This document shows, piece by piece, positions 684 through 46,817 of a stretch of DNA of 64,000 nt; the first letter of the stretch is position 1, and every line of letters begins with the position of its first letter. Under the pieces are notes generated by a model. That model was not told where the DNA came from, did not search any database, and worked only from the letters and a program-made list of their open reading frames with translations. The DNA comes from Pavona decussata (taxonomy: Eukaryota). Made by a program: the position numbers and the translations under genes. The stretch covers positions 310,001 to 374,000 of the forward strand of contig CDRNST010000030.1 in NCBI GenBank assembly GCA_977016875.1, read 5' to 3'.

Positions 684-3123
684 TTAAAAGTAATGAGTGG
701 TCAGACGCTTTGAGCGTCTTATGTTTAATCTTTTGTCTTCTTTTTCCGAAAGACAGTGAATACTTTCTGGGCAGCTGCTGGTATATCCGTCAAGAGACCT
801 AACCTGGTTACCAATAGCAACAGTGTCCTCACACCGCACAGTTGCCTCGGTAAAGGATGTACTCCTGTTCCAGCCGCGCATGCCGTAAGTATCTTTGCAG
901 TAGACTTTGAGCCTGTTACAAGTGAAAGATGATCGCTGATCCAGATCAACCTCTCGGTCTTCCTCTTTCAGTGATTGTAATTTGTACGTTTGCTCCGTGA
1001 ACGTACGAAGCCTACGACCTCTTCCAGAGTGATTTCCATTCCACGCTCTGTCACCCTGTTCATCCTCGCTCGATTCTGGATGTTTTAAGTGCCTAGGTCT
1101 GATTGTGATCACCTTTCCGTTCTCCATCGCTTGTGCGTTCCGTGATCGCACCCTGGTTACTCTGTCTATCTCGCTACAGTCGGTGTCAGATGATTCGTGA
1201 CCGTGTCGGACAAAGCTTGTGCCGTACGCCCAAGACAAGCTTGGCATTTTCCTTGACTTCGGCAACGAGTCGTGACCTGAATATACTTTGTTCACCCGCT
1301 TAGGACTTGAAGAATTTCCGACCGTTAAAATTCTCCTTCCTCCACCTCCGTCAGGGTACTCGACCATAGAGTCATGTAAGCCTTTAGCGAGGCCGTGTTT
1401 TGGCAACGCGACGCCTTCGTCTGGTGGTGGAATGTTCTTGGATGTAGCGACATTCTCAAGATCATTCGATACCTTTTCTCGTGATCGTGCATTCCAAGTG
1501 TGATACACGTGACTGTAATGAAGTTGAGGCACAGTCAGTAGATTTGAATCGAGGGATTTATTTGCATGGCCTAAATAGCGATCTTCCCAGGCTTTAATTG
1601 GAGTTTGATTAAGCTCCCTTGCTGATTTGTAGACATCTTGGTAACAGCTCTCTCTATTTACCATGGGCACATGCAGATTGCATTTGCTGTGTCGCTGTTG
1701 GTCTTTGCCGGATGCACGTACATTCTTAGAACAGCTAGCTGGCGACTGACACGAAAAGCCATCTTTATCTCTGACTTGTGCCACGGTGCTGAACTTTGAT
1801 TGCTCATCAGGTCCCTTCATTGTTTTGTCGCGACAGTTTCGGAACCTAGACTTAAAGCCTGCTCCAAAAATGTACGCTATTACAATAAAAACCAATAGCA
1901 GACCAACTGCAAGTGCTATTGCAATAGGATAAGCTCTATCAAAGTGGGAAGTGCCTCTTGCCTGTGGAATGGTATCAGGAGTGAGTTTTTCAAGGATCCC
2001 ACCTGATGAATTTGAGCTTCCATTTAATTTACCAGGTGGTGTTGTCGACATTTCGTGAGCCTTACTATGAAACGACTCGGTAAAGGCATATGCATCCGTA
2101 GTAGGACTTAAGAGAGTTCGGTTTTCCTGCTTCTGCTCAATTAGGCTTGGTTTGTCTTTGTTGGATACCTCATGGCAGGTTCCTACTGAAATCCCTTTAG
2201 AGGGATCATGACGGCTAAAGTTTATAGGATCATTGTTCACATACACATCTCGCAAACATCCAGTAAAGCTTGGGTATTTGCGAGCACTACGGCCGAACCG
2301 TATGGTATTGTAATACTCTTCTGTATTCTCAGGGACTATGCAAAACAATTTGTTTGTTAGCTTGTAACTCGACATCATGACCAACTCCTCGTCAATGCGT
2401 AGAATAATTCCAACTTTCTCAGCAACAATAAATGCAACTTTATGCCATAGATTGTTAGCAAGAAATGTTTCTCTGGAAACTAAAATAATCAAATTTCCTT
2501 TTTGTGTGTTTGGATCTTCAAATCTCACAGTCACCTTTATTTTTCCTTCTTCAAGGAAAAACAAAGCTGTAAACATTTGATTCATTATCTTCCCAACAAA
2601 CGCGCGAGACTCCCGGGTTCTAATTTGAAATTCAAATGACACATTACACCTGAAATTATCCCTTTTACTAAAAAGTACTTTAGAATTCTTATCAGATATC
2701 GAAACAATAAAATCCTTGCTTTCCGCACAACTTTCAAAAACGTCTCCAAAATGCTGCGCATGTGCTGTATTAAGCCGCTGTACTTGACCACGCGAAGACA
2801 CAAAATTCATTTCCAGGTCCTCAATGCATCCTGAAAAATTCAACACCTCGGGGAAACAGGTTGCGTTTCTATCGAGCTCTGGATACTGCCTTGAGTCAGG
2901 AAGACCGGCGAGGTATAACACTCCATCAGACTTGCTTGAGAAACCTCTGACTTTGATTTTCGTTGAATGTCTATCCACTTGGCATTTAATGATATTGTTG
3001 GTCTCATCTCGAGTGACGTGTATCCCCAGCTTATGCCATTTTCCGTCCGCAAATGATTGGTCTGCAGCAACAGCGCCAACTTGCCATGTGGAAGGGAAAT
3101 TGCAGTTGTTGATGAATATGCAC
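684..3123 (-). CDS. Gene A exon 2 (terminal): laminin-G (x2) type I membrane protein, CNTNAP/neurexin-like
   Basis: Acceptor ttgttttacgtcacgctgccAG|G TGC ATA TTC extends the 764-aa ORF upstream in frame (RCIFINN...SFADGKWHKL...VDRHS). LamG motifs FADGKWH, LYLAG, FSGCI, IRT, LANNLWH, FTGCLRDV; S/T/P stalk; TM segment PIAIALAVGLLLVFIVIAYIFG; about 390-aa cytoplasmic tail; stop TAA at 686-684. Confidence 0.9.
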
Positions 3124-3446
3124 CTGGCAGCGTGACGTAAAACAATAACAAGGGATTTAGTACGTTGCTGACAGAAACAGTCAAACCAGTTTAGGAAAGA
3201 AAACTTAACATCTTCAGATTTCGACCCAGCTGAGAGAACTATATTGCCTCCTTACCTACGTGTACACGTCCCCATCTACCTGGAGAAAACGTGGGTGAGC
3301 AAAGTATACACAGACTAATTGGTTCCTTATATATGTATATATTGGAATTAAAAATAACATACCCTTTGGTTTAAAGAAAGTATAGAACGGACGAGAAAAG
3401 GAAAGAAAAACGACTGAATGAAGTAACAAAAGAACAAAAGTAACGA

Positions 3447-3593
3447 NNNNNNNNNNNNNNNNNNNNNNNNNNNNNNNNNNNNNNNNNNNNNNNNNNNNNN
3501 NNNNNNNNNNNNNNNNNNNNNNNNNNNNNNNNNNNNNNNNNNNNNNNNNNNNNNNNNNNNNNNNNNNNNNNNNNNNNNNNNNNNNNNNNNNNN
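3447..3593. other. Assembly gap (N run)
   Basis: 147 Ns. Confidence 1.
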
Positions 3594-5725
3594 AATCAAT
3601 AAAAGGACACAATAAGGGTATAACCGAAATCGGAGGGGGTAGATGTAATTGCATAAAGCAGAGGGAGGAATGGGAAAAACAGAATAGCCAGTTTCCTCTT
3701 GGCCACCTTTCTCAGTGCTGAAGCAAACACTCGCTACGTACGTTTCAGCTCTTTACTTTATTTTTCTCTAACTGAGACGCGCATGGAGACAGCACTGTAA
3801 GATTGACAGTCGGTTGTCCGGCTAGTTCCAAGCTTCCCCGTATTAGAGGAAGCCGGTAGACACGTGCGTCGTACCCTGGCACGTTCTATAAGTTTTCGGA
3901 TCGAGACGAAACTTCGTAACGAATTTTTAAAGCAAGCAGAGGAAGTTCTCTCTAATGTATGTTTTTTCATTATCATCGTCATCAGTAACTTTAATGCGTT
4001 CAGTCTTCTGTAAACTCCATCGCAAAAACTATATATATTGATAAGGAAAGAAAGAAAAGAAGGAAGGAAGGAAGGAAGGAATTAAGGAGGAAAGCGACAC
4101 TAATTAACTTACAGGGAAACGTGGTGCCGGGCTCGATCATTTACTAAGTTCTATATACTTTTATCCTGCTGAGGACAATCGCGTCCCTGAATTCAGACGG
4201 CTATATAGTATAGGTCCTCTAAAGCGTGTAAAAACGTTCAAACTGTATTTCCCTAACTAAAGCGTCCTTGTTATTTTGAAAAGAAACTCAGTTTATGCCG
4301 GTCACAATAGACAAACAAAAAGTCCCACACTTTAAATAGCTGGGTCACAATTAACGCGTGCTCAGAAACAATGAAACAAATCTTGTTGTAATTCATTTTA
4401 CTGGCTATATAACAATTGCAAATATCACTCATTTTTGTTAGAATGTTTCGCTTCAACGGTCTTGACCACGTGTCTTAATATTGATTGCTGTTGACCCTCC
4501 AACAGAAAACAAAGCTCAAAAGCGTTCAAATGTTTGGAATACAGTGATGTTTGGACGGATTCGACGAATATAGGACATCAAAATCGAATCGCTTGACAAA
4601 CAACGTTCTATTAAAAATTCACTGAAAACTAAATACGGCCACTGAATTAACCTCCATTCACATGCATCATCGCTAGAAATGCGCCAGACTTTCGTACTGT
4701 TTTATTCCATATTTAGCGCCTCTCATGATCTTCGGGGACTAAAAATTAATGAGAAGAAAGAGAGTCAAAGGGCCGACGAAATCGGTGGAAACAAAATTTT
4801 AACAACCGAAGACGCTGTCAAAGTCTTCCTGAAGCCAAGTCTTGTTCGCACAGTTTCACCCCGCGGCGTCCAAAGCTTTCCTCCTCTTCTTCTCCGGCTG
4901 GGTTCCCGAGATTGAGGTAATCTGCAGTGTTCTACTTGTAATAATGACTTTAGAATTATCGTGAGTCAGAAACCGAAAGCGTACGGCTCTTACACTGATT
5001 TGTCATTCATAGTTGCCAGCCGAGGGTGGTTCTTAGTGGTTCTTAGACCCACTAGAGAGATCTTGAAACAACTTTTATTCATGCGCCAATATTCCTCACT
5101 ATTTTTTTAATATGACTAATAAATCGTGATAACCAGAATGAACAAGCGTGAAGCATGCTCTGGCAGTGAGTTTAAAATAAAACTAAATCTTGATCACCGC
5201 CACAGTCCCCGGCATAGTTTTATACGCCGACTGCTAGTTGCAAACAAACAATTCTTCCTGTTGGTATTTTATCAGCACTATCGATCGAATAAACTTGCAT
5301 GACTCGAACATCGACTCTGAAAATGAACTTTTGTTGATGGTGTTTGGAATCCAGTACCGTACACTCCCCTTACTCGATTAGGTTTGCGGTGAGCAAGTGC
5401 CGCCCAGCCCTCCAAATTGGAACCCCTTTTAGAAAGATTTTTCGTTGCTTTGATTTAAAACATCAGATACATCATACACAATCGACAGAACCGTTTACTG
5501 AAATTATACGTTTGTATGTGGTGAATTTTATTAATAAAAAGAACCAAGCAAAAGGTGATCACTCACACCACTATGGCGTGGGCCATGCGCGTGTCAGTGA
5601 ACAGGTTCCTATTTTCAACCGGGTGAGTCAATTTACACGTTACAATTTGTCAGCCGATTATTTTTTCTGTCGGTGTAGCGCGTGGTGAAATTGGCCTGAT
5701 TAAGGAAATATGAAGCACTTCCACT

Positions 5726-5731
<6 letters not shown>

Positions 5732-5769
<38 letters not shown>
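5732..5769. repeat. (AT)n microsatellite
   Basis: Direct reading. Confidence 0.95.
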
Positions 5770-5772
<3 letters not shown>

Positions 5773-5967
5773 AATCTGCCGATTTTCGTCAGCTCATTCA
5801 TGTTTATATGGTATTCTAACAGTTTCCTTGCACACTGAACAAGGATTACATACCCAAAACATCTGGGGATTTTTTAAATACATTTCTAAACATTTCTGAC
5901 ACTTCTTGACATTTATTGCAATATCAACCCTACCACTAATACAATTACAGGTGTTACGCATCACTAA

Positions 5968-6183
5968 AGTCTGGTTTTATTTTCACTAGCGACGCAAGCA
6001 CAAGTACAAGCTCAAGCATAAGAGTTATGCCATGTAAGCACGGGCACAAGGAAAAGGAAACATTTTGATCCTTGCTCTTGTGCTTGCGCTTATGCTTGCG
6101 TCGAGGCCGTTTTCACGGTGAAATGAGCATTCTTATGCTTGTGCTTGTGCTTGCGCACATGCGTCGCTAGTGAAAACCAGGCT
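5968..6183. mobile_element. Harbinger/PIF-type MITE
   Basis: TIR AGTCTGGTTTT(ATTTT)CACTAGCGACGC / GCGTCGCTAGTGAAAACCAGGCT with internal GCACAA/TTGTGC repeats; flanks TAA/TAT. A decayed relative lies near 43470-43545. Confidence 0.7.
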
Positions 6184-9100
6184 TATATAACGAAATATCG
6201 CGTTCACCGTCCACTAGTTTATGATAGTCTACTATGTACAGCCCATAGGGTTCAGCACTGGTAGATGGCTCACGATAGTGATTTAAGAAGCACAGTTTAA
6301 ATCTTCCACGTGCTTACAATATTACACCCCGATACTCCAAAATGGCAGAATGGGGACCACATCTGGCGCGACACTTACAGCATAGGCGGATGACTCCAGA
6401 GGGTATCCGCGGATAGTTTGAGTTATGTCTGAAACTAGGACGCATTATTTAGGTACTGTTTGGTTTCATTGTCTTTGAAGAAACTTCGGCAGACTTAGTC
6501 ATCATCAAGATGAGAACTTTAGGATGTCAGTGCAGTATGAAAATAATCAGGAAAAGCACAAAAATTAGCATAAAACTCAGCTGAAACATTGAATCGCTTT
6601 TATGCTCTTAGGCCGGCAGACAGCTGGTTTTCAAGTCTCTTAAGGTAATGACAAAATTTTGACCGGTGACCTTCAAAACTAAAACAATGCAACATAGTGT
6701 ATCAATGTTAAAGAGCTAACCCTTCAAAAAACAATTTTGTACTGGCTATGGTCGTCAAGACTCCTGGATATATACTGATCACACACGCATTTCAATTAAT
6801 GAAAATATGCCAGGCTAACACTAAAAAATAACTATTGCAACCTTCGGAGACTGATGTTTTGATTCAAACTGTAACTTGTATCAAAAGCGGGTTGGGCGGC
6901 GCGTGGCCGGTTACCCACGCCGCGTTATCGACTCTCGCGTCCTTTTACTCGCATCCAGCTGTGACCAACACGCCGCATCGAGAGCAATTCAAACACGAGA
7001 CTTTCAGCGTTTGACGCTTGGATGCTTCCGGTGCTCGTGATACAAATCTGTTGTCATTCTATCTGATAAAAGCAATTGAAAGAAGAAAAAAAGTGGCCAG
7101 CGACAGATCGTTTGTCATTTACAGCACGTGGCTGCATTCCAGAACAATCGATGATAGGTCGCAAAAACGTTTGACATACTTGATGTTTTTCTATCCCTTT
7201 TACACGTGTTCAAAAATATTTTTTAAAACTTTTATTTTTAATAGACAATAACAAATTACTCGCTGCAGTGTTTACTATGTTGTCGCATTTAAAATTAATC
7301 TTGCAGTTACTTCTGGTCTTGTTTTAAAAATGACTCAGTAACACCGTTTGCATTCATGTGCTTCATCAACAATCACTACGCCGGCAGGTGAGAACCGAGT
7401 AAAAGAAACAATGATAAATAGAAGGTATTATAGAAGTCAGATTGGAGGTGCAAAATAAATAAAAGATTTTCCTTCCAGAAATAAATTATATTGTTTTTCG
7501 CAAATATACTTTTTTTATTGTTGCGTACCTATAACATGGCCGCCGTGAAAACGCTCTATACATTACAGTTTTTTACTGGTTCAAAATTGCGTTACACTAC
7601 TTAAGCTAGGTTTTGGTGAAGAGTCCTTGCTTAAGATTCTAGGGAAAACGGGCAATTGGCGATAATTCTAAGGATAAGACAAAACTGACTGCCAAAATAT
7701 CGTAAAGAATAGTGGATAATCAACACTTTCCATTTGCCCGAACTGGCCGGAGATATCGAAATGGATCAAAACGTAATGCTCCAATTTGAACGACAGTTTA
7801 TATACCTCTTGTTTGAATTCCTTTTAAATCGCACACGTTGCCCTCGTAACAAGTCCTCCCTCAAGAATTTTGTTCTGCAAACCTTTCCTTCTAATGACAA
7901 CTTCAAATCAGTTTTACATCCCTAGCCTAATAGCGGCCGATCTGGCGTGGTGAACAAAAAAAATCGATCAACTCGATTGTATGGATAATATACGAGTCTC
8001 GTTTAACTTTTGAATTCATTTTGTTTCATTTAGATAGCTCTTAATTGTAACTAGATTTACATGCGTCTAGTAAACACGACTTTTTAGTATCATATGCATG
8101 GTGTCTTAGCACCTTTTTTTGTCGCAAAACAGTCGAGGTACAATCGTGTTAGTTTTTGTTTCAGGAGGTTATTCATTTAGTGATATTTGGCCAATTAGGG
8201 AACTATAATGTTATTATAAATATTCAAAACACAATTTTGCCATGCACCACCAGCTAGCGAACCAAAGTTACCAGTGTTTTGTTGTTCAAACAGGTGGCGG
8301 CAAGACAGGTAGACTTGTTTACAAGACACGAGTTATTAAATTCTCATTTTCAAGCAAATAAACTGGTATCATTAAACCATTATCGCACTCGTTCCAAATT
8401 TACCGTACAAAAGAGAACTCTTTCGCCCTTATTGCATGTGGTTTCAGTGCGTTCTTGATTTGAGAAACAGAGTAACTATCGAAGTAATAAATACGTGAAA
8501 CCTATACGCACAATTTTCCCATTGAAATCGGGCTTGAAGCCCGTAATAAATCCAGTTGTCGTTCCAAGTATTCAATGTTCTGTGCCTACACAGAACGCGC
8601 TGCCTTATTTGTCAGTCGCTTGATTTCTAGTCAACCAAAGCTGTGACAAAATGTGATAAATGATTGATGATCGGTTATAGAACAAATTAAGTTCTTTGTG
8701 TCGCTTTTTTAATTAGTAGAAACGAGTGTGATGTCCCAATCAATTTAATATGCCCGACTTATAATTAAATTGCCTTAGTAACAGACAGTCACTCTTTCAT
8801 TTTAACTGCGAGCCAGTAAATTTTTTCACTGTCTGTCGTAACTGAGTTGTCAGTAATACATCGTTATGGTAACAATCTGTTTATACTTCTGAGTCGTTCT
8901 AATGTGAGAAGGGTCTTAATTTTGACCATGTTTTCAGTGGGGTTTTAGTTTTGACCATTTTTTTGGTTTTAAGATCTAGGGTATGCATTGCCTGCTGTCC
9001 CTGTCAAATAGAGCAGTGTTGATTTCTGCTTGAAAACGTTGGAGAATCGGTGGCCGTTTGAGATGTCCAGTGGTAAAAGATTAAGACTGTAAACAGTACC

Positions 9101-11699
9101 TGAAGGTAAACGAGTTATTTGCACACCAGGCTCGAGATCGCGGCGGAAGTCTACTGACTTACTTTTGCCGTTTTGATCTGAAAGAAGGAGAAAGCTTTTA
9201 ATTTGGTGTTCTGGTCTAAAATCGTTACAAAAGCGTACTATTTACACCGAAATAGATTTAAGGTTTTACTGCAGTTTTGCGGCCCACACCGCAACCAAAA
9301 TTTCTTGGATGTGCAAAAAAGATGGACACAAGCCGTTAACAAATAAAATGGCTATAAAAGACATTCCGCTATATCGTTATTGTTTTGTCTAGCTTTTAGC
9401 TGCATGGACACTGATTTTTTTTCCCTGTCGCATCTGTTTACCTGCAGCTGGTAGCTAAAACTGAAAACCATAAGCGACGCCCCAAGTTTCGTTCTGTCAT
9501 GCATGTCTACCATATGGTGCAAGTAGGAGAGGAGGAACAATTTACTTATTTATTTTATTATTTTATTTTATTTTTGGCGGCGGCCGGACTTTACAATAAT
9601 TAAACACAATGCTTACAAAATGACCACAAGTAGCGAGAATAATTTTGTTACAATTTATGTAACTAAAACGTATCGTAGTGCTAAAATATTCATATGACAT
9701 GTCTCTCAAAACAGTGATCTGATAGCTCAAAGGAACGTGGCGTTCTATTTTAAATATCACAAGCTTATGTTCTCCAAATCCACTTTTTTCAACAAATTTA
9801 TAAGAGTTAATCATGCATTGTTTGTTTGGCGGATGCCACTGTTAGCAGTCAAAGCTAGTTTAAGGGAAACATGTTACAAAAAAGATTTGTCGGGCTTCAT
9901 GTCCGTTACCCTGTCGGAACCAGCTGTTTCCCGTTCTTTTTTTTTTTTGAGGGGGGGGGGGGGGGGGTGGAGGGGGGTAGGGGGTCGTCTATCCGGTATG
10001 ATGACACTTTGATCGTGCGTAGTTGAGCGCGCGAAAAACGCTTCTACCGTCCTATGAATTCTGTAAGGGAACGTTGCCCATTTCTTTTTCCCGACCGATA
10101 AATACACACGCAAGCACTGCTCAATAAGGGATTTTACAATGTGCTTTTACTTTCTTGCGGCTTCAGTCAACCCTCCCGATCATGAAGCATACGTTTTCCC
10201 GTCCTTGTTGCCGTACATGATTTTGTATTGCTCTGTATGCACAAGTTAAGTTTTATTACAACACTGTACAATTTTCCCCGTGTGCGGGCGGCTCGCCGTT
10301 TCCGCTGCTTAATTTTGGAGTTTCCCGGGAGGAAATACTTGTGAGGTCACCAGTTTTCCCTTTACCGACCAACTGTTGATTCACTTTGTAAGGACTTGAA
10401 TTCCATGAAGATTTAGAGACTGCTAATTTTAGCGATTCTACTAAAGCGAAGTTTTTTTTGTGTGTGTGTGTGTGTGTTTTTTTCCATAGTCCACGTTTTT
10501 AAAAATTTAAATTTAGCTTGAGTACCTAAATCAGAAATTACTTATCGAAGGGCTAAACTCGTGTAATTAAGGTAAAAGGAATTGTTCGCCAATCGGCGAC
10601 ACCCGATAGACGCGTAAAATCGTGGTAAAACGGTTTGAATGCGTGAGTTAAGATTCTGGCTAGTGTCACGGATATACTGAATAAATTTCACACTTCTGCG
10701 CAGGCAAGCTAGGTAGGCGGTCTTCTTTTTCAGTTAGTACAGTTATCTATTGGTAATATACCGACCGTAAATCTTGTTCCTGTTTTGACTAATGAGACGG
10801 CGTATTTCACTCTATACTTTCTTTTTTGTACGTGTTCTAACGCGCACGTTTCCAGAATAAAACTGTCATTTCGGAGAATGAGAGGGATTCTTCTGGGGAG
10901 GGGAGAGGCTTGATCGAGGGTCCGCGAGGTTCGCGCGCGAGTTTTCACGTTGAGAGAACGCCGTTGCTTTAAAGAGAGGTGTTTTAAAAAAGTAGCTGAT
11001 CGCCAATGCGTCATCAACTAAGTGAAAACGGAATATAGAAACAAATTTACTAAATCACTTTAGCTACTTATGCCCATTTGCTATGTCCGTTACAGAAACT
11101 ATTTCAGGAAAAAACAAATTTAGAATATCATCTCATTAAAAAAGAAAACGATTTAAAAATAAATGTTTCGTCATTTCTCGTTTTAAACTGCAACTCAATA
11201 TCCAATTCTGCGTTGCATGCATCGGAGGAAGAAAATTGTATCTTTCGCACACTAAAACGCCCACGCGTCTGAAACGAGCGATTCTATTGACGATGATTGT
11301 TGGCATACAAGCGGAAGCTTACCGACACGCCTGAATTCACGTTTGATCATTCGATACAAAAGGAAATAAACGCACATTTGCTATGGGCGCAACTTCCTTG
11401 TGTAGCTGGATATTTGGGGATCAGGTTTATGTCGCAAATCGAGTACGTCAAAGTTCTTCGAGTACAATTACGACTTAAAGTGGGTATGCTGAATGTCTGA
11501 AAGACACGGGGGTGAGTCAATAAGTGATTTTATGGACGTGAGTTCATTACTTCCTGTCATACATGTGAACTTCGGATGAAACAGTTGATAACCTCTATTC
11601 TTAGAGTCTGAAATGTCGTCCGTCTCATCCCTCTTGCTCCGTTAGGTGGGACCACGAGAAAGGAGGACGTATTCTCATGGTGCTAGCAGAAAAATGTCC

Positions 11700-11826
11700 T
11701 TAAAAGCCAAGACATTCCTCTTTGGCGATAATTCTCTTTATTCTCATTACCTGTATGTTCGATCAAGCAGTGAGATTGTAAGGAGAATTTAGATGCTGGT
11801 CTCTATTGAAGGCTTAAAGGGATAAT
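11700..11826. mobile_element. Fragment of a piggyBac-like MITE (right end)
   Basis: GTAAGGAGAATTTAGATGCTGGTCTCTATTGAAGGCTTAAAGGGATAA resembles the ...AAAGGG|TTAA end of a common coral MITE (recognition only). Confidence 0.35.
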
Positions 11827-13797
11827 TGTCAGAACCGCGATTTAGCATTAATTAGTTGCTAAAGTAAATTTGAAAATCTACATTGGACTCTTTTTAATCA
11901 GACCAGGATCAAATGCCATAGAAAGTATCCAAAAATAAGACATTTCGAAGAGGAATAATCACCATTTTTCCCGAAAATCAAACACTTTGGGAATCAAACT
12001 GAAGCTATTTCTCAAATTAGCGGTGACCAATGATGGAAAGTTAACATGTTTTGTTAACAGTTACGCGTTTCGTTCCAGTTCCAGTTTCGAATCGTTCGTT
12101 AGAATTGAAAAAACGAAAGACAGAGACTTTGTGAAACAAATTATCAAGTACACCCAAGCATAAATGATAACCGCTTAAAACACTCAGCCGACACGCGTGC
12201 CTTTCTTTCCGAGTAATCAAAGAAGTAATCGCTAACAGTAAATAGCATTTGGTAAGAACAGTGTGTCGATCAAGCCATTCTCTTGGCGGCAAACATAAAC
12301 ACGTGCGGCACACTCACAGTGGCGTAGTCAAACAATGCTCGATACAATTGGAAGATAAATTTATTATTATAAACGGCGGTCCAGATATTAAACTCGGGAC
12401 TTAGTGAATAATGACCAATAATAACGCTATAGGCTGCGCGCAGTTAACAAGTACTTGCGAGTTTCTTCGAGAAGCGAAGTTGTTATGACTGTTTCAACAC
12501 CGCTGCTAGTTGTGCTCGCAGCCCGCTCTATAGTTTAAGGTTTGAATGCAAAGCAGATGTCTCCCGCCGCTCGCCGAATACATGATTGCAAAACGAACCG
12601 TTGGAAAAGTTAAAATCATCTCAATCTTATTTGTGGAAATGTTTTCTCAACAAATTTTGGATTGTTTTGTATTTTCCCCATTGTGCATGATTGGCGGGCA
12701 AGAAATATACCGTTAGCTGGAATCGCAAAACGGTTTCTTTTGCCCAAAAAGAAAGAACCAGGATTACCGTTTTAAAACAGGAACAAAGGGTATTTGGGAA
12801 ACAAAGACAGGCCTAAATTATGTTCATTATATTCAAGACCAATAGCGGCAAAAAATATTCGGTGTTCCTCGGTAAAAGGATTTAAGGGCGAATTTAGTTG
12901 AGTAGGAAAATTGGATTATAAAACGTTGCTAATCAGTGCACCTTAAGGGAGATTTCAAATGCGCGTATCTTTACCAAGAAAGCCAATTGATTAGTTTTTG
13001 CTGTCGAACAAAGAAGATTTCTTGTCACATCCCAAGCTTTTGTTCACAAACCATCTTCCAGGTGCCATAATTCTTTTTTCTTATTTGAGATTTTTGTTTC
13101 CTTTGTAGACAAATTGATGAAAGAAATAATATAAAATAAACGAGAACACCAAGTATCGAACTTAGGAAATTTGGACGATTTAAAGCGATATTGAATGCAT
13201 TAAGACTAAGTTAGCGAACGTAGCTTTTATAAGATGCACGAAAGAGCGTCGTTTGGAGTAAAGACCATTGTTTCACTAATAAAACCGAACCACATGACAT
13301 GGGCCTTCCAACCGGGAACAAGCGTCCATAACTTCCGTTCTATGCTCTACCTCCCGTCTAAGGCTACAATCACAAGCGCTACGGCTATTTCAAACCGAAA
13401 TCCTTAACTAAAATGGAGATTTTTTTTTTTTTTTCAATTTGGATCCCTTTGCTCATACGTCGCGACTCCACGTGCCTTGGAGTGCGTGTAATGGTCACGT
13501 GTCTAAATGTATTGTTTAGTCTGGCACGCGAACGGCTCGCGAGGCAGGTGCAAGAAACAAACATATGTTTTGAGCAATATCGTGTGTGGCACGCGCCTGC
13601 TTTTTTGTTGTTAGCAAACAAGTGATTCCTCGAGGGACTCCAAAACAAAGCTCTCTGTTTCTTTGATTGCGCAGAATAATGCTCTTACAATGTGTCAAAT
13701 GAGCGGCGAAAGGAAATTATGCTCTTTCAATCGGAAACAATAGCCACGCAACAGTGAACACCCTTCACGGCTTGAGTTACCGCTGGGCTGGGCTGGA

Positions 13798-13832
13798 TAT
13801 AAAAGCGGCACGCTTGGCACTTGCCATTCAGT
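13798..13832 (+). promoter_or_regulatory. TATA box and Inr of the Rab gene
   Basis: TATAAAAG at 13798-13805 and TCAGT at 13828-13832; the A at +1 is 32 bp from the first T of the TATA box, which is canonical spacing. Confidence 0.7.
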
Positions 13833-13909
13833 AACTCACTGAACACGAAGTGAGCGCGTCGCTGAAAAACAGGCTGAGCAGATTTGCTGAATTGAAAACG
13901 GTAGAGGAC

Positions 13910-14578
13910 ATGGATGAAGCCTCGAGAAACGACTTCAAATATTTGTTCAAAATTTTAGTCATCGGAGACGTTGGTGTTGGAAAAACGTCCTTGATTCGAC
14001 GATTTACCAAGGGCTACTTCGCCGAGAACATCACTTCAACGGTCGGGGTTGATGTGGACTCGAAGATCGTGAACATTCACGGCGACAAGGTGAAACTGCA
14101 GTGCTGGGACACTGCCGGACAGGAGAAATATCGCTCAATAACACAGAGCTATTACAGAAACGCTGATGCTGTCATCATGGTGTTTGATCTGACAAACCAA
14201 GGATCATTCGCGAGCATTCCACAATGGCTCATGGACGTACAGCGCTACACGAACAAGAACGCGGTCAAAGTTCTTGTCGGAAATAAGACGGACTTGAAAG
14301 GCGCCAGACGCATGGTAAACTCTCGATCCGCGGCGAATCTCGCAGAATTTGAGGACTTGCTGTATATTGAAACGTCCGCAAAATGGGACGATAACATTGA
14401 GACTTTGTTCACGGAACTAGCTGAACAGCTGAGAGAAAACGCAAAGAGCAAGAGCCTGAATTGTATGAACAGCGCACACAGCTGTATTACAAAGAAGAGC
14501 TACAGTATTGCGTCGTATATAAAGAGACTTGGGCAAAAAATTCCCATACAAAGCCCAGCAAGTTTCTGTAGAATTTAG
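13910..14578 (+). CDS. Intronless Rab GTPase, Rab30/Rab19/Rab43-like (222 aa), nested antisense in the gene A intron
   Basis: First ATG at 13910. G-boxes GDVGVGKT, WDTAGQE, GNKTD, ETSAK. Rab30-like strings LFKI...RRFTKG and RSITQSYYR. Confidence 0.92.
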   Translation: MDEASRNDFKYLFKILVIGDVGVGKTSLIRRFTKGYFAENITSTVGVDVDSKIVNIHGDKVKLQCWDTAGQEKYRSITQSYYRNADAVIMVFDLTNQGSFASIPQWLMDVQRYTNKNAVKVLVGNKTDLKGARRMVNSRSAANLAEFEDLLYIETSAKWDDNIETLFTELAEQLRENAKSKSLNCMNSAHSCITKKSYSIASYIKRLGQKIPIQSPASFCRI

Positions 14579-14933
14579 ATTTAAAATAATCAAGCTTTAT
14601 TCAGTTTTTTAACAGTCTCGGCGCTTGATCTAAAGACTATAAGATCGTCTTCTACTTCTTTGTCTTTGCTTTCATCGCGAATTTTGTAACATGAATTCTT
14701 CTAGCTGCGGACGAGGAAATAGCTGAGACGAAGTTGAAAAAATTGCGCCGTAATATCAAATACGAATTTTTGCTTGAAATCAAGCTTCTAATCGCAATTT
14801 GTTTCTAAAATTAAATAATGTATAAAAATGTGCGCGTGGAGCACTCAGCTGTATACATGTATATTTTATAACAGAAATTATATTTGTAATATAACTCAGA
14901 AATGTGAATATATAGATGATATATAATGTATAA

Positions 14934-14939
14934 AATAAA
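14934..14939 (+). terminator. Poly(A) signal of the Rab gene
   Basis: AATAAA about 355 bp after the stop, within an AT-rich 3'UTR and followed by T-rich sequence. Confidence 0.5.
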
Positions 14940-22029: not shown

Positions 22030-22340
22030 ACGGTCATAGCAGTTTGTTAGATGTCAGTTTCTCTTGCTGCAGCTCTTCTCGTGGCTAATCCTGCCAATAT
22101 TTGAGCGGCAGGGCCGGCTGCAGTAACGGCACGTAAGGGTGTCAAAATTTGAGACGGCGGTTGTTTGACGCACTCTCTGTTTTCTTTGATCGCGCTTCTC
22201 GTCCCACTCGGCCCTCAGCATCTCTTCCTGCAGGGGCACCGCAGATCTCCAGGCCGCTCGATCTGACGCCATTCGTTTGCAGAATTTTGGGTCGATCTGT
22301 AGATGCTTCATGGTGCCCTTGCACACGTCTTTATAGGCTT
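22030..22340 (-). mobile_element. 3' fragment of a non-LTR retrotransposon (RTE-like ORF C-terminus)
   Basis: YKDVCK..MK...ID.....A.DR..WR...KR..RK...CRYCSRPCRSNIGRISHEKSC is the typical RTE-clade terminal segment with a zinc-finger-like end. Confidence 0.75.
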
Positions 22341-22375
22341 TATTGCTTAATGCGTCTTGATGTACCATCTTCGAT

Positions 22376-38369: not shown

Positions 38370-38499
38370 NNNNNNNNNNNNNNNNNNNNNNNNNNNNNNN
38401 NNNNNNNNNNNNNNNNNNNNNNNNNNNNNNNNNNNNNNNNNNNNNNNNNNNNNNNNNNNNNNNNNNNNNNNNNNNNNNNNNNNNNNNNNNNNNNNNNNN
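38370..38499. other. Assembly gap (N run)
   Basis: 130 Ns. Confidence 1.
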
Positions 38500-38943: not shown

Positions 38944-41900
38944 CTATAGTTCAGTTTCATATTTCTGCGAATGCGGCTGCTTCAGCGGCATAGCAAAAGC
39001 ATCTTTGTTATTGCGATCTCTGGATTGCTTGTCAGACTGCTCTTCGTTAGCATTTGGATGGTGCTGCTGTTGCTGTTGCTGCTGCTGGCAGAAAGCATTA
39101 GCAATACCGCTATAGCGCCTTTGGTTGCTATCAGAGAAGCCGTTAGTTCTGCTCTGTTTTAGTCCATTGACTTGAGCTGAGGACAGCAATGCTTCCTCCT
39201 CACTTTTTTGGCGGGAAAATAAGCGTGGGCGCGGCGAGCTATGCTTGCGCTTGTCTTCTTTGTGTGACTTCATTTCCCGCCCTTTTTCATCGTAAGCAGA
39301 CGGAAGAAATTGGACTTTTTCCGCTTGCGGATAGCTTAAACTAATGTCACACGAAATTTGTTCATTATATCGACTGCAGCCAGTCAGATCTGTTCCGCTC
39401 AATGACTGCCTGGGTGTACCGTCTTCAAGGTTATTCACGTCCAAAGAAAGGTAATTGTCATGAGGGTCGGACGAACGCCAGTTGTCATTGTCAATTCCAT
39501 TTTTTCTTTCCGGTTTACAAGTTTTAAGGGTGTTTTCTTTGGAAGAATCGTCGTCTAATTCTTCAGAATTTCTATCTTTGTTGACAGTATACTTTATTGA
39601 ATACTGTCCTCCAGAAAAGAGCATAATCTCTGAGCTTACCTCCGAAATCGTAGCTGTAGAATCGTTTTCCGAATCCGCTAATAATTGTTCATTTTCGGTT
39701 AACAGTGATGAGTCTTTGTAGCGTTTCATGGGGCTGGTGGTGTTTTCGTTCTTGTCGCTGTAAGTAGGTGCAACGTCAGCGGCAGTGAGTACGTCATATA
39801 TGACCTCCTTTAGTTTCATGATTTGCTGTTCGGTGCTGAGCTGTTTAGATGCTGGAAAAGGAACGACGTCGATGATCCCGAGATCAACATCTTCATAGTC
39901 TGTTATCTTTCCAGGCTCTTCCTTTTTTATATCAGCGTTTTCCGAGTTCCATGAGCAGCACCCATTGCTGAGATCGAGTCTATCCGTCTCCGCGTCACTG
40001 TAAAGCTCTGGAGACGATGAAAGACGACACTCATGCAAACCAATATCATAACTGTTTCTCAGTGGATAAGGGCTCGCCTCAAACTGCAGGACCTCGGGCT
40101 CGGCTGGGCTAGGAGGTCCAAGTTCAATCGTATCCATATGGCGTACATCATGATACAAGGGAGTTTGCAGGCATTTGCAGGGAAAAAGCAAATTCTGTTT
40201 CACAAGAAGCACGACGATGGCAATCACAAACACTGCCAGAATAACGCTTAATATGATAAGCACAAGTTGTTGGTTGGCGTTTTCGCGGATGGTTATATAC
40301 TTTCTAGGTCTTTCTATGACGACGATATGAGGTGTTTCACTTAAGTTCGTTGCGGGGTTGTTTGCTTGAGGGGTCGCGCGGGGCTCTGTGGAAGACACAT
40401 CGTTTCTGCTAGATAATGCGCCGGGTGGAGTAGAGATCACTGTGCTTTCATCACTTGTAACATGGCCTTTTCCACCTGTCGCTGCAGTAGGTGTTGTGCT
40501 TGGAGACTTTATTCCACGTGCTGTTGACTTTGGAGGTATAGGTTGACGTGTGATTGAAGTTTGATCCAGTGGAAAGGTGGTTGTTGTTGGTCTCTTTGTA
40601 GTTGAGCCATAACATTCAAGACTGCCGAGAACAAAATATGATCTCCTGCTTGTTCCATCAACGCTAAATCTCAGTTTCTTTACTGGGAGGCTTTCTGAAT
40701 CCGTTAGGTATCCATCATCCATATGCCATTGATTGTCAACAGTGTCACAGTTGCACACCTTGCTTTTTTCCGCACAGGTTCTGTTCACTCCACATGCGCA
40801 CTTCATGCTCCCAGGAAATGCACCTGACCAGTAATCCTGTAATTGACCGTCACGTGACACCCAGCGTGCCCCTCGTCCTGACTCGAGATTAAATGTTTTA
40901 GGTGAATCAAAAAGTACCGAGTTATAGCATTTGTATTTAAGGTATTGTCTGCAATGAGTGCTACTCGCGATGAGGTCCTTAATGTTTTGCTCGTTAGAAT
41001 TCTCGTAGAAGATCTCATGTTCGTAAAATTTTCCGCCAGCCTTGTTTTGAGCAGCAATGACGCGATTTCTATCTTGAGTATGGAGAATCACGGTCGAAGG
41101 GCCCTTTACGTTGGTCATATTGCAGTAGACCGTGAAAGGCTCTGAATTCTGGGGATTTATCTTGTAATATGAGTTCATTCTTTCACCAGCAGCCCACCAA
41201 TCAGCACAGGATTGCATAAAAAACGCAGGTATTTCGCATTTCAGACCTTTGAAATCAGTCCCTATGCAGTCACAATATGTTCGGTTCCCGCGCTGAGAGC
41301 ACCTGCCTCCATTTTTACAAGGATTTGGTAAACAGTCGTCTTTGAGGAAGCATTGTCCCACTGACACCTGGGATCTGTAAACAGTTGTAAAGTCAATCTT
41401 CTGGCCCTGTACTGTGAGATCACGCATGCATCCCACAAAACCGAGACGTCCCCTGTCGCTAGCTCCGACGTAAACTTGGGAACTGCTCACAAAGCGTCCT
41501 CGAGATGGTTGCGTCTGGGAAGTAAGTATACTGTCCACTTCAAGTGTGATCCTTTGTATGCTGATGTTGACAGCAACAGAGTGCCACATTCCGTCATCCA
41601 ATCCAGATCCACCAGGAAGCGTCGTCGCGGAGGACTTAGCCATAAATTCCACTTGCAGCAAGATTTTTCCAGAAACTAGCGAAATAAATATATTAGCACC
41701 GTTGTTTTGTCTTATTCGTTGGAATAACAAGATTCCATCTCTATTGTAGGTTCGAAACTTAAAGCTGTACGCAGCAGTGCTGTTAATAGGAGCATTTACT
41801 TTGATGAAGGACTCGGGTTTGCGAAAGGTAACAGGACGATACCCCTCAGGGGTAATGTTACAGCCAGAAATAAGTCCCCTTCCAGACACAGTTTCATTTC

Positions 41901-42235
41901 TTTTCCAAGCGATGTCAAGGAGCTTTAGATCATTTATATGCACGTGTTCGTTTTCAAGGCATCCTTCATATGGAACAAAGTGACTCTCTCTTAAAAACCA
42001 ATGTTTCGCCTGTACTTTGCTAACGTCAACTCCACCCAAGTAGAAAGTCTGGTGCGCAAAACGTCTGGCGTGGAAACCAGGAACCACTATGAAATATGTG
42101 TCCACGTCAACGAAAAGAGTAAGTGCCGTGCTATTTGCTCGCTTTATCTGTACTTGGTGCGCGAGATTATCTGCCAGGTTCTTACCAAAATGACCAGTAG
42201 ACACACTCCGCATACCCCTCACGTAGATGGAACAT
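38944..42235 (-). CDS. Gene B exon 2 (terminal): CNTNAP/neurexin-IV-like, LamG-LamG-EGF-fibrinogen-like-stalk-TM-tail
   Basis: Acceptor ttttcttatttcaaccgacAG|A TGT TCC. LamG motifs (FYLGG, YEGCL, FKFRT, LDDGMWH, FVGCMRDL); EGF CLPNPCKNGGRC...CDC...GLKC; fibrinogen-like QSCADW...PFTVYCNM...CRQYLKYKC...CACG...CNCD; T/P stalk; TM LVLIILSVILAVFVIAIVVLLV; ends YETEL. Confidence 0.93.
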
Positions 42236-45200
42236 CTGTCGGTTGAAATAAGAAAATCAACGCCCATGTTGACATTAAACGGTAATAGGACTCATAAGAA
42301 TGATTTGAAATATCAGGCGACTGCATGCGTGCCGCCAGGATTCCGATTTGTTCATCTGTGACAAGATGTTAGGAAAAATATATCGACATGTTAAATCATT
42401 GGTAAATTAAAAGACATTCAACAGAGGGTTACTGAGAAAGATGCAACTGTTACTCTCCCTTTGCATCGGGGCTGTTAATGAGCAAGCAGATTCGCGAATT
42501 TTGTTATATGAGTTATAGTGGCGACTACTTTGTTATCACTGCTTATAACGAGCAAAGCTTTGCCATTCACATTAGAAAAGTTAAAAATGTACACAATATG
42601 CAAATAACAACGGGATTTTTGTAACGTTCTTTTTTTATACATGTGAATTTTTAATAAAACCTGGTAAAAAATGTACACTGTCCAAGTAGAATAGATAGAA
42701 GTCCAGAAGTCAGAAAAGAAAATGCGCGGTTAACTTGTTGATACTCCGCCGCAGACTTGCCGAAACCTCGAAAACTGGAATCACGTTACATTACCTTTTC
42801 TCTTGGAGTTTTTATTCAATGCTAATATTGACATAGTTCCTTATCATGTTTGCTGTTCCCATGACGCAAAATGTACATTTTATTATATACCAATTTATCT
42901 ATTTTTCTTAATTAAAAAAAGAAACAATTATTAAAAAAAACTGACAGCCTGACCGCATTAAAGAGGCTTGTGAAACATATTCCATAAAAAATTCCTCACT
43001 TCTTAGAAGGTTTCTACCGAAAAGATAAACTAATTGCTTTAGTTGCAAAATTTTCAAAATATCTATTTGTTACATAATTTGGTGATATGATCTTCAGTTA
43101 CCAGTGGTTGTAAATGTATAGACTGAAACACTGATACTAACCAAGTGCGTTGAGCAAGAAGATACGAGAAATGTAATAACAAAACGCCTTTCAGCGACCT
43201 GATTTGTGTGGTACCACGATATTAAAATTTATGGACCTGAATTTAAGTAACTTTAGTGGTATCCAAAATTTGGGATTTTTTAACGACTTTAAGACAAGTT
43301 CATTTAACAAAGCCCTGGCTCGTGGTATGGACGGTACATAAACCTTGATCTTAGATTTTTATTTAGAGAAGGTATAGTCTAACATAACATTAAACATAAC
43401 ATTTTATTCAGTAGGCTTCAACACAAATACAACGTAAACGCGAACTCGTACCAGTATAGAAAAGTTTTGTCTCGTGCTTTGCTTGCGCTTCAACCAGTTT
43501 GCCGTATGGCTTCGTGTGCTTGCGTTGCTTGTAAATACCAGGCTTGAAGGATTCCATGTCGAAAGAAATCGTTTTAGCCAGAGTATTCAGCATGAGATTC
43601 GTTAACCTATGGGTCATAATGTTATTCGCTGTACTATACCTATTGAAGGCCTTTGCATGTGGAAATCCTACTAAAATCGCTAAAATCTCGCCAGCAAACT
43701 TTAGTAATTTTAATTTCTTTAACCTAATATGTTGAACCTTCCTCTTGAAAATAAAGCCTCTGAAATTCACATAATCTCTCAAGGACCAACTCTCTACCAC
43801 TCACTGATTTTTTTAAATTTAACAATATTGTACAGCAATTTTTGTCAGAGTTTAAAGTATGGCTTACCAGAAAAATATCAACATTTTGCCATCTTTTAAT
43901 AAATTCACGCCAAGTAAGGAACAATGATTTGTATGCCTGAATTTTATTGAAGAATTCTAAAAACAAAATAATGTCACGGTACGCTCAATTTAAACTAACC
44001 ATTATGATTTAAGGATTGTTTTTGATTCATAATCTATATTGCATATACACTCATCTATATCTAAAACCGTCTAAACGTCTGAAATAACTCTCCCATTTAC
44101 CTGTCAGTATGAATGTAGCCTTAGCATCCTTGGCCAAGTTGTGTGTATTTTATAAACCTATGTAATACATTTGTACGCTTCAATATAACCAAATAACAGT
44201 AACTAAGTGGTGATACTTAAGTCTCCGTGTGAGATCGAGAAAGCAGGTCAGGCTACCTGTAGCATAACAAACATTACAAATCTGTCCAGAGGTTGCGCAA
44301 ACCGCGAATGCACAGCTGGGGATTTTCTACTTGGCTTTCTCCCACTTTTACCTTGCGGGAACTCTCTCCAAGCGAAATACAGTACAAAAGACAAGGCGCA
44401 ACACTTCGATACTTAATGCTTGTGCCAGTCTGCAGAGCATGACACGTGCACACACAAGTATCGTTCGCGAATGTTTTGTGTGCACGCCAAATTTAGACCA
44501 CTGAATTAACTTGCCTCTACAGTAATACCGTACTGAATTTTAAGTTTCCACTCTAATTTAAGACTAAAAAGTACAGCCCTGCATTATCAAATGCTGTAAG
44601 AAAAATGGCGAGAACGGACAATACGGAAGGAGTACTATTAAGACTACTTTAACATTAATATTTCTTTAGGAGTTGCCAACTTGTAAATTGGAGACAAAAA
44701 TCTCCAACCTTCAGGCCTGGGACTAAGAATTTCCATGCAGGTGAGGTTTTTATTGAAGTGTGGCAACCTGCAAGCGTCAGTGTACGCGTGTAATTTCGAA
44801 GATCAAACACACGCCAACCAAAATACCTTCAGTGCACGCGCGAGATCTCGTCGAGCTCTGCCATTCGTTTCTCAGAGTTTTTGTGGGGTATTGTGTTTGC
44901 GCTTCGGTTTGCGTCACTTGCAAAACACCAGGCTAAAGCAATAAACGAGCTCAAATGATCCGATTTGTTGTTTGACCGATTTGATTTGATCCTTAACCGC
45001 TTCCGATTTTAAAGGAAAGCAATGACCATAACGACAGTACTAAACTGTTCCCTGACTGTGTCTAAAGTACTGTATTGAGTTACCACTACTGCAAAGCGAA
45101 TTCTTTTTAAAGCGACAATTCTAGTACCAAGACAGACAGGTGAGAACAGCTTACTCTACGCGAGCTAAATGGGAAGTAGTTTTCACTCCATTGTAGTCTA

Positions 45201-46569
45201 TGTTTATGCTTAAACATTATGAAATGAAATACACTGTTTATACCAAAGGTGAGAAAAAAATTCACGATAAACTGCTACTCGGTGGTTATTTAGCACACGT
45301 TCATATGTTCACTGGGGATATGTACGTAGGCGAAAAATCGCGGAATTATGCTCAGTTCGAAGAGCGATTAGCATTATTTCTTCTTCAAAACAGACATTTT
45401 ATAAAATACTTATCTTTGATTGTAACATTGATCTGTGACTTACATTTAGCGAACAGAACTGTCTACATAAATATTTCATAATGGACTATCGGAACTACGC
45501 GTGCGTATTTCCATCAAAACGCAGGTGCAAAAGATGGATTTCTTTGACAGCACACAATTCATCTTCCTCTGTAATTAGGCTCCAACAAAAACTGTTCCTG
45601 TGGCAAAGCAACAATGTCGCCGGCGGAGTTTTGTATTTTGTAACCACGGCCAAACTATGCAAGTTTCGTGCAATAAGTTTTTGAGACAAAAGTAACGGTT
45701 CTGTAGAGAGCAAAAAAAACTGCATATACGTGGATAACTCACAGAGGGGAGTCCTGACGCGAAAGCCACAAAAAACAAATTATAAGACTTACTATTGAGA
45801 AGTTTTTGATTTTACAGCTTACACACTGACGTAAATAAAGTAAACAGAAATCTTAAATATCAAATGAAATTCGATTCCACGACAAAGTAATCAAAAGTAA
45901 TGAAAGGCAATTCCTTCCCGGCAATTCTAACCTCGGCCTAGCTCTCGGCCAGCTGGATAGAACTCTTTAGATTGTGTTTTAAAATATTGTTAAGGGTTAA
46001 AGTTCCCATCAAACAGAGAAACATCATACAGGGTTCACAAGCAATCGGCCAATTTTAGTTTAACTGTAGTTTGATAGCGATTAAAAGAGAAATATTCATC
46101 GCTCATAGACGCGTTTCCGCTTTTTTTACTGATATAGTCTGCTTGTTTTCGATAAGGCGGAGTAATGAAATTTTGATCTAAATATTTTATCCTTTTTTTA
46201 TCTGAATAATTTCATTTTTGTAGCAATTTTCCCAGCGTGTGTCTGCACAAATTCCAACAAATATTACCAATAATTATAACGTGCATGAAATGAAACCTCT
46301 TGCCACACAAAGAGAAAAGAGTTTTCTTTGACGAATACCCTCCACGTTTGCTTCCATCTTTAACACTCTAAGCGCGCTTAAATAAAACTCTCATGCGCCT
46401 TAAACAAGATCAAGTCAGACTCCCCATTGAATCTTTCCAAAAACAGTTACTGGCAAACGTCGCCCTTGCTTTTCTTAAAAAAAATAATAATCAACATCCC
46501 ACTTCACGGAGAGAGGAGGCTTAGATGTAAACTCAGATAAAGAAGCAAAAACTAAGCTAACAGGCTCAC

Positions 46570-46817
46570 CTGATTTTTCCACGCAGGAGCTCAAGTGTTA
46601 TGAAGTCGGGTCCACTGCTGCCCGCGTGAAAAAGTGTTCCAGAAGGTTTGATCGTCCGGAACACGAGAACGATATCGTCTGGAAGCGTTCTCGGCTCTCC
46701 ACTGTAAGAGTACTTTACGTAAGTTGCTCCGTCGAAGCTCGTGTACGAGTCTCCGTGTCCGTAAGAAGTAATCAGCGCGAGAAACAGCCAGCGGAATAAC
46801 GATGCGACGGTAAACAT
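46570..46817 (-). CDS. Gene B exon 1: signal peptide and start of LamG1
   Basis: ATG at 46817 (MFTVASLFRWLFLALITSYGHG); SFDGATY...LVFRT..SGTLF...LRGKI; donor AG|GTGAGC (phase 2) joins 42235 in frame, giving 1179 aa. Intron is 42236-46569. Confidence 0.9.

Follow-up and report, generated by a model that had tools for sequence, protein, structure and literature searches.

Adjacent CASPR-like genes with LamG domains in the stony coral Pavona decussata

Tandem LamG (LNS) domains on a single-pass type I membrane protein characterize the neurexin/CASPR (LNS) superfamily, in which vertebrate CNTNAP genes have many exons and, as Ganot et al. reportedly found in 2015, Stylophora has several Neurexin IV variants with tissue-specific expression. 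Both genes considered here, which we call Gene A and Gene B, have these superfamily features and lie in a 64,000-nucleotide stretch of Pavona decussata DNA (assembly GCA_977016875.1, contig CDRNST010000030.1, positions 310,001 to 374,000), referred to below as the window. Cnidarian neurexins have been classed as alpha, delta and epsilon, including short types with PDZ motifs, with no fibrinogen-like domain mentioned and no discoidin-bearing member reported outside Bilateria (PMC11294457). The Acropora skeletal matrix has yielded a 'neurexin', two tandem 'EGF and laminin G' genes and one two-LamG protein, an architecture expanded in cnidarians (PMC4890752), and a 'neurexin (contactin-associated protein)' is counted among the core skeletal proteins (PMC8382919). 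The published cnidarian neurexin/NrxIV-like proteins thus belong to the same superfamily as A and B, being LamG and EGF membrane proteins with Cntnap2 as best match, tandem in Acropora and expanded in cnidarians, whereas the four papers that describe them do not speak of an FBG-like domain, of long tails or of any member that, like A, has LamG domains only (PMC4890752, PMC8382919, PMC7115838, PMC11294457).

Two long minus-strand open reading frames (ORFs) are prominent in the window, at 684-2978/3125 and 38944-42267, and they correspond to the main exons of Gene A and Gene B (Table 1). The best protein matches are scleractinian, and 'coral metagenome' is among the labels of the sequencing runs. 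The explanation that we regard as probable is that these are two adjacent same-strand genes of two coding exons each, encoding type I membrane proteins of the neurexin/CASPR superfamily, with B an orthologue of 'CNTNAP-like 5' and A a faster-evolving, LamG-only relative. An earlier note on this DNA had placed the split of both genes at the same phase-2 Arg codon in LamG1 (GKL-R-CIF in A, GKI-R-CSI in B), and the coordinates, splice signals and frames, read directly, agree with it.

Gene B starts with an ATG at 46817, and the DNA carries an in-frame TAG upstream of it within the same exon. Its first exon terminates in GKI plus AG at 46570, followed by the donor GTGAGC, and after the acceptor (acag) an A at 42235 restores AGA (Arg) ahead of CSI; the frame then runs uninterrupted to the stop at 38944-38946, ending a 418-residue tail in KYETEL. 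Exon 1 carries positions 1-30 of Pfam Laminin_G_2 on residues 53-82, agrees with the N-termini of RefSeq orthologues P0017 and P0025, and can be aligned to residues 185-241 of fish CNTNAP4, which reach exactly the donor. At least part of the locus is present in 19 of the 20 public runs listed, and contigs of four runs (four studies) were placed on 41300-46900 to examine splicing. The 46570|42235 joint, a check that the earlier note had named, is present in contigs of X1, X2 and X11 (three studies), which skip 4334 nucleotides (nt) with CT..AC on the plus strand, that is GT..AG on the minus strand, and have anchors of 87-239 nt; the fourth run, X6, has no contigs on either exon. The two-coding-exon structure of Gene B, its transcription and its splicing are read directly. 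An X11 contig (record 8) reaches at least 358 nt past 46900, and the true transcript start may lie further upstream, possibly with additional untranslated sequence or exons. The short sequence TATAAATA stands at 46935-46942 on the minus strand, 118 nt upstream of the ATG. The intron is almost free of contigs except at one 40-nt element (43393-43432), which shows high depth in many unrelated contigs with differing flanks in all four runs and is a dispersed repeat, transcribed or abundant elsewhere.

Table 1. Coordinates of Gene A and Gene B and of their main parts in the window
Feature	Position	Strand	Description
Gene B	46817-38944	minus	2 coding exons, 1 coding intron
Gene B coding exon 1	46570..46817	minus	signal peptide and N-terminal ~30 LamG1 profile positions; 3' end is AG of the split Arg codon
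Gene B intron	42236..46569	minus	4334 nt, GT..AG, phase 2; joint 42235|46570 in RNA contigs
Gene B coding exon 2	38944..42235	minus	1096 codons and stop: rest of LamG1, LamG2, EGF, FBG-like domain, Ser/Thr/Pro stalk, transmembrane segment, 418-residue tail
Gene B EGF and FBG-like domain	40597..41349	minus	exon-2 residues 296-546; aligns to CNTNAP4 ~540-787
Gene B transmembrane segment	40189..40257	minus	hydropathy maximum 3.61; 84% mean orthologue identity
Gene A	23312-684	minus	2 coding exons, 1 coding intron; predicted junction
Gene A coding exon 1	23029..23312	minus	signal peptide and N-terminal part of LamG1; 3' end is CG of the split Arg codon
Gene A intron	3124..23028	minus	~19.9 kb, an estimate since assembly gap 3447-3593 lies inside; predicted from splice signals
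Gene A coding exon 2	684..3123	minus	812 codons and stop: rest of LamG1, LamG2, ~85-residue stalk, transmembrane segment, 394-residue tail
Gene A transmembrane segment	1854..1931	minus	hydropathy maximum 3.08

Domain and homology searches were run on each exon separately. Pfam placed two LamG domains in each gene (Laminin_G_1/2, E 2e-13 in A and E 4e-24 in B), together with a sub-threshold match to the N-terminal part of Fibrinogen_C in B. Exon-2 residues 3-543 of Gene B are collinear with residues 243-787 of fish CNTNAP4, which comprise the rest of LamG1, LamG2, EGF and the fibrinogen-like domain, at 31% identity over 541 residues (E 5e-68) and without rearrangement. A predicted AlphaFold structure of Gene B residues 290-560 (25-row alignment, mean pLDDT 81) matched fibrillar procollagen C-propeptides (COLFI) best in Foldseek, at E ~1e-7 and TM score 0.42-0.53, and next the FReDs of angiopoietins, ficolins and FGL1 at E 1e-5 to 1e-4; this model supports an FBG-like fold in Gene B. 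A PDB sequence search returned neurexin-1 structures (E 2e-43), and no CNTNAP chain was found in that search. The proposed order in B of LamG-LamG-EGF-FBG, stalk and transmembrane segment is borne out by Pfam, the CNTNAP4 alignment and the fold matches, with a Ser/Thr/Pro-rich stalk, one transmembrane helix and the tail following the FBG-like domain in one open exon. It was also correctly predicted that A stops after LamG2 at the equivalent Cys: its GISVGTC, the Cys of which closes LamG2, aligns to QVSVGQC of B, there is no EGF-FBG, and the protein passes straight into a Cys-free stalk, the transmembrane helix and the tail with no further Cys-rich domain. A single strong hydropathy peak follows the ectodomain. 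In both genes the signal peptide directly precedes LamG1, and no Pfam match to discoidin (F5/8C) was found in either exon of A or B, the fish CNTNAP4 control scoring 4.5e-27.

Gene B resembles CASPR, CNTNAP and Neurexin IV in being a type I membrane protein with the LamG1-LamG2-EGF-FBG-like cassette in that order, whereas A is without EGF-FBG. Both differ from these proteins in having neither the N-terminal discoidin domain nor the LamG3-EGF-LamG4 half before the membrane, in having one coding intron, in tails of 394-418 residues against 24-49 in the CNTNAPs compared, in the absence, by eye, of an R/K-x-G-T/E-Y juxtamembrane motif from these tails, and in their C-termini (KYETEL in B and THYF in A, against KEYFI, KEWWL and KSYWV in the relatives compared). 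Since neither gene has the discoidin domain, the second LamG pair or the short 4.1/PDZ tail, and B shares only the central cassette, A and B are best classified as CASPR-like proteins within the neurexin superfamily of cnidarians and not as CASPR orthologues. They also differ from classical alpha-neurexins, which repeat LNS-EGF-LNS units (4-6 LNS), in having no more than two LamG domains and in the FBG-like domain that B carries; only 46% of the Gene B query is covered by neurexins, at E 1e-36, against 1e-74 for CNTNAPs, its best matches outside Cnidaria. A and B share with a cnidarian LamG-LamG-EGF-FBG family (RefSeq 'contactin-associated protein-like') a single coding intron, which splits a phase-2 Arg codon of LamG1 and leaves all that follows to one large exon. 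Its short-tail genes (Nematostella XP_001631324, Actinia, Acropora and Montipora 'CNTNAP-like 2', and L002/L003 of this genome) share with B the LamG-LamG-EGF-FBG-transmembrane ectodomain and the LamG1 intron but differ in a tail of 72-74 residues with a juxtamembrane R-G-E-Y and a Y-W-V end, and are 25-35% identical to B and ~25% to A.

Orthologues of Gene B, 1166-1185 residues long, all agree with it in the N-terminal sequence across the exon junction and in the terminal KYETEL. Those of Stylophora, Montipora and Acropora cervicornis go by the name 'contactin-associated protein-like 5', that of A. muricata by 'contactin-associated protein-like 2', and the entries of A. millepora, A. digitifera, A. 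palmata and Orbicella are labelled 'uncharacterized'; XP_022794095 (Stylophora pistillata), XP_068695897 (Montipora foliosa) and LOC114955519 (Acropora millepora) show no substantive difference from B, and these RefSeq entries are automatic annotations without functional study. Gene B is probably not the skeletal protein B8UU78, because the Acropora B is named differently in RefSeq. The idea that the cluster is undescribed does not hold, given the 'contactin-associated protein' names in RefSeq and the published cnidarian neurexin/NrxIV-like relatives; the family is annotated and partly published, and what the literature surveyed does not describe is the FBG-like domain as a sign of kinship with CASPR, the B subtype with its long tail, and the A subtype, which is LamG-only and has a distant first exon. 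A sea anemone protein, from Actinostola, shares the EGF-FBG, transmembrane segment and proximal tail of Gene B, which places the origin of the B type before stony corals and sea anemones diverged. Together with short-tail members in Actinia and Nematostella, this contradicts the proposal of a lineage-specific family; members are present throughout Hexacorallia. Relatives of Gene A, at 43-90% identity, fall into 25 protein clusters, of which all the named ones are from stony corals.

Mean identity to orthologues, computed by region, was 57% in A and 60% in B for LamG, 33% and 52% for the stalk, 55% and 63% for the tail, and 74% and 61% for the last 60 residues; the transmembrane segment stands at 60% in A and 84% in B, and the EGF-FBG region, absent from A, reaches 76% and is the most conserved part of B. 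Many invariant blocks run through both tails among orthologues, which argues that the tails are constrained and are not spacer, and the tails of A and B are mutually unrelated. As the earlier note proposed, A and B form a tandem pair; they are real paralogous type I membrane genes of the superfamily, and their adjacency is kept in other stony corals. Specifically, the Stylophora accessions PFX23515 (B) and PFX23517 (A), numbered two apart, share one 513,508-bp scaffold, four further pairs of B and A representatives sit on contigs of equal size (943456, 2185612, 237867 and 295774), and the B-then-A order is seen directly in metagenome contig L013. On this contig the C-terminal 438 residues of a B orthologue (73% identical, with the KYETEL end) are followed 2.6 kb downstream, on the same strand, by a homologue of A exon 1.

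No further family member was found by tblastn in the window, where only A and B are present. A whole-assembly search with the Gene B ectodomain, the kind of paralogue search that the earlier note had called for in flanking DNA, returned five more LamG-LamG-EGF-FBG loci, each largely one open frame: L002/L003 and L004/L005 on contig C3, and L006 on C161. At least three further paralogue lineages in this genome have the same intron position. The first exon of L002 lies 7.3 kb upstream with donor CG|GTGAGT and an acceptor that restores R-C, that of L004 lies ~4 kb upstream with donor AG|GTAAGA, and in both, as in A and B, the intron splits this phase-2 Arg codon of LamG1 at an identical position; the main exon of L006 begins at the same LamG1 spot. 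In L004 and L006 the FBG-like domain is interrupted by at least one additional intron. The LamG1 phase-2 Arg intron (~profile position 30) is a family-wide ancestral feature, and its presence in L002 and L004 means that the intron-poor structure predates the split of A and B. The intron described as identical in the pair is thus indeed at the same codon and phase in both genes, but it is no signature of them, as L002, L004 and the L006 spot have it in common. Of the proposed origin by intron loss or retroposition, an old, 3'-biased loss of introns is the favoured part, as it better suits a gene that keeps a 5' intron and is otherwise intron-free; recent retroposition was rejected, an intron being retained and shared with distant paralogues. 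L002 has as its orthologues 'contactin-associated protein-like 2' in Acropora, Montipora, Stylophora and Actinia and 'contactin-associated protein 1' in Nematostella; its 72-residue tail has a neurexin/CASPR-like R-G-E-Y juxtamembrane motif and a Y-W-V end, close to the C-termini KEYFI, KEWWL and KEWYV seen in fish CNTNAP4, in a CNTNAP-like protein from a flatworm and in neurexins.

Gene A, a single-copy gene in this genome, starts with an ATG at 23312. Its first exon terminates in GKL plus CG at 23029 before the donor GTAAGT, and the acceptor, a pyrimidine-rich tract ending in cag, is followed by a G at 3123 that restores CGG (Arg) ahead of CIF; the frame is then uninterrupted to the stop at 684-686, and the 394-residue tail ends in THYF. 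Eight overlapping AATAAA motifs occupy a short A/T-rich repeat directly after this stop (598-672, minus strand). Exon 2 begins at about LamG profile position 30-46 and has no signal peptide, and exon 1 provides the signal peptide and the N-terminal LamG strands. In a whole-library search, exon-1 ORFs from three other protein clusters (P0236, P0237 and P0238) were 48-62% identical to Gene A exon 1, and each terminates in GKLR and a stop, as expected from a conserved G|GTAAG donor. By tblastn the whole window holds only two N-terminal LamG1 exons, one per gene, and 23029..23312 is the sole one between Gene B and Gene A exon 2. Among ORFs of at least 70 residues inspected by eye, no long coding-flagged minus-strand ORF was found in the 19.9-kb intron. 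We infer the Gene A junction from the canonical splice signals, the matching phase, the GKLR-ending exon-1 ORFs, the synteny and the sole N-terminal LamG1 exon, and on these grounds the two-exon model is very likely correct.

Several observations weigh against the reading of the locus given above. For Gene A, the joint 23029|3123 comes from the sequence and not from RNA, and a spliced product of ~907 residues was not found in protein collections: the whole-library search with exon 1 returned exon-1-sized ORFs only and no spliced product, the exon-1 alignment scan of metagenomes returned three contigs, all genomic and not cDNA, and 20 A-type and B-type clusters inspected contained full-length spliced B products and no A product of that length. 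The public A models of Stylophora and Desmophyllum have no exon 1, the Desmophyllum model being truncated, and an assembly gap separates the two exons. These points, with the many equal-length public contigs that start in intron sequence directly upstream of exon 2, would suit a different account, in which exon 2 is transcribed from a start inside the intron or A is a decaying copy, and the exon at 23029-23312 belongs to another transcript or was misplaced by scaffolding across the gap. We consider this account improbable: without exon 1 the protein would have no signal peptide and only a partial LamG1, the exon-1 ORF is kept in other corals with the same terminal codon, it lies between B and A exon 2 in the correct orientation both here and in L013, phase and splice signals are compatible, and the intact 812-codon ORF with conserved blocks speaks against decay. 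As to kinship, A and B are only 26% identical over 156 residues of LamG2. In a maximum-likelihood tree of the LamG1-LamG2 region (35 rows, LG+C20, rooted on three neurexins), A, B, the short type, L004 and L006 form a polytomy, and the grouping of A with B that the earlier note expected appears in the best tree at a support of only 58/14. The sequences thus neither show nor reject the sisterhood of A and B. Both tails, moreover, lack detectable homologues or domains in Pfam and the ESM Atlas, a signalling role for them is suggested by conservation only, and the PDZ-ligand reading of Gene B draws on just its last three residues.

The same data bear on where A came from. Given the conserved adjacency and orientation, the simplest reading is that A is a tandem duplicate that then lost EGF-FBG and diverged rapidly, a course that sequence by itself does not establish. 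Alternatively, A could be an older or independently placed cnidarian LamG-LamG member that sits beside B and may never have had EGF-FBG. Profile-profile scores leave room for this, as A scores 127 with B and 128 with the short type (CNTNAP 109, neurexin 101), while B scores highest with bilaterian CNTNAP (284), ahead of the short cnidarian type (251) and neurexin (203); the polytomy, a Gene A stem of 2.23 substitutions per site, the family-wide intron and the unrelated tails point the same way. Against it, adjacency and orientation are conserved in several corals, the best non-self BLAST matches of A are B orthologues (E 3e-14, then CNTNAP3 at 4e-10 and L002 at 1e-9), the best tree places A with B, if weakly, and LamG2 of A terminates at the Cys that precedes the EGF domain in B; we therefore regard an independent origin as the less likely course. 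The bolder proposal that A is a stony-coral-specific, fast-evolving CASPR-like offshoot that shed EGF-FBG and acquired a conserved 390-residue signalling tail for a coral-specific surface task, for instance calicoblast-skeleton contact or partner recognition, is a shade more doubtful still. A separate matter is the direction of change in the family as a whole. Calling the genes truncated presumes a full CASPR ancestor, an assumption that finds no backing in the absence of reported discoidin members outside Bilateria (PMC11294457) or of any beside the paralogues examined. The chances are evenly balanced that the short architecture is ancestral, LamG-LamG-EGF-FBG being the original form of the CASPR lineage to which bilaterians added discoidin and LamG3-EGF-LamG4. 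No discoidin or LamG3/LamG4 exons were found within ~10 kb of L002, L004 and L006, nor near B, whose N-terminus is fixed by the in-frame upstream stop, and all cnidarian members form one group (89/91) beside the bilaterian CNTNAPs. On the other side, the tree is rooted on three neurexins only and polarity is not tested by it, a discoidin-LamG gene was sought near the paralogues and not genome-wide, and loss is as easy as gain.

Under the favoured reading of two adjacent superfamily genes, A and B would act as cell-surface adhesion or recognition receptors, whose LamG domains, joined in B by the FBG-like domain, may bind extracellular partners. The stalks may be O-glycosylated, mucin-like in B, and the tails could dock cytoplasmic scaffold proteins through an end resembling a class I PDZ ligand (T-E-L) in B and an aromatic H/Y-Y-F end in A. 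Tandem duplication of a B-like neighbour, before stony corals radiated, would have given rise to Gene A, with subsequent EGF-FBG loss and rapid divergence, and the one-intron structure would reflect an ancient loss of 3' introns in the ancestor of the family. A role in epithelial or calicoblast contact is a reasonable guess based on the roles of relatives in septate junctions and the skeletal matrix.

Two assembly gaps lie in the window, and neither touches coding sequence, so that no reading frame depends on them. The gap at 3447-3593 is inside the Gene A intron, 324 nt upstream of the acceptor, and since the exons of Gene A stand on opposite sides of it, their linkage rests on scaffold and synteny, not on reads. 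The other, at 38370-38499, is 445 nt downstream of the Gene B stop, past AATAAA motifs at 38713-38718 and 38608-38613. The Gene A intron also contains transposon remains and, nested in antisense orientation, a Rab-like gene, whose intact ORF for a Ras/Rab-family GTPase has no introns and lies at 13850-14578 on the plus strand (Pfam Ras, E 2.8e-54); the Stylophora accession between the B and A models, PFX23516, may correspond to this nested gene. The 15.6-kb spacer that separates B from A holds, at 31928-32536 and 32574-33221 on the minus strand, a fragment of a DDE_Tnp_4 (Harbinger/PIF-type) transposase (E 2.6e-25) and next to it an unassigned ORF, and a 268-residue ORF without a Pfam match lies at 29968-30774 on the plus strand.

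Elsewhere in the assembly, contig C3 carries near-identical blocks at 523-538 kb and 729-745 kb (L002-L005), each with a short-tail CASPR-like gene and a convergent L004-type gene, a pattern suggestive of recent segmental duplication or of haplotypes left uncollapsed; L003 stops prematurely, and L005 is altered at conserved Cys positions. The FBG-like domain of Gene B has at least 65 further matches (37-48% identity) in large tandem arrays on C86 (~0.96-1.91 Mb), C162 (~1.62-2.39 Mb), C404, C47, C31, C182, C331 and C7 (loci L007-L012). The array ORFs examined are of a small secreted type, with a PAN/apple domain (L008) or two Ig domains (L009) before a C-terminal CASPR-type FBG/COLFI-like domain, and many matches have one in-frame stop at the match edge.

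Overall, what the earlier note observed is correct and its interpretation partly so; this is a real and fairly ordinary pair in an annotated family, and the result is mostly a refinement of annotation and does not overturn current understanding. Possible novelties are the LamG-only make-up of A and the cytoplasmic tails of both genes, which are long, conserved and orphan. For annotation, the first exon of Gene A, predicted 19.9 kb upstream, is absent from the public Stylophora and Desmophyllum models examined, and these therefore have no signal peptide and an incomplete LamG1. For the origin of CASPR, discoidin-free cnidarian LamG-LamG-EGF-FBG genes with one ancient intron bear, at modest value, on whether the CASPR lineage predates the cnidarian-bilaterian split. 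Moreover, relatives of these genes are core proteins of the coral skeletal matrix and putative proteins of septate junctions, which makes the long, conserved orphan tails of A and B candidates for lineage-specific signalling from the cell surface.

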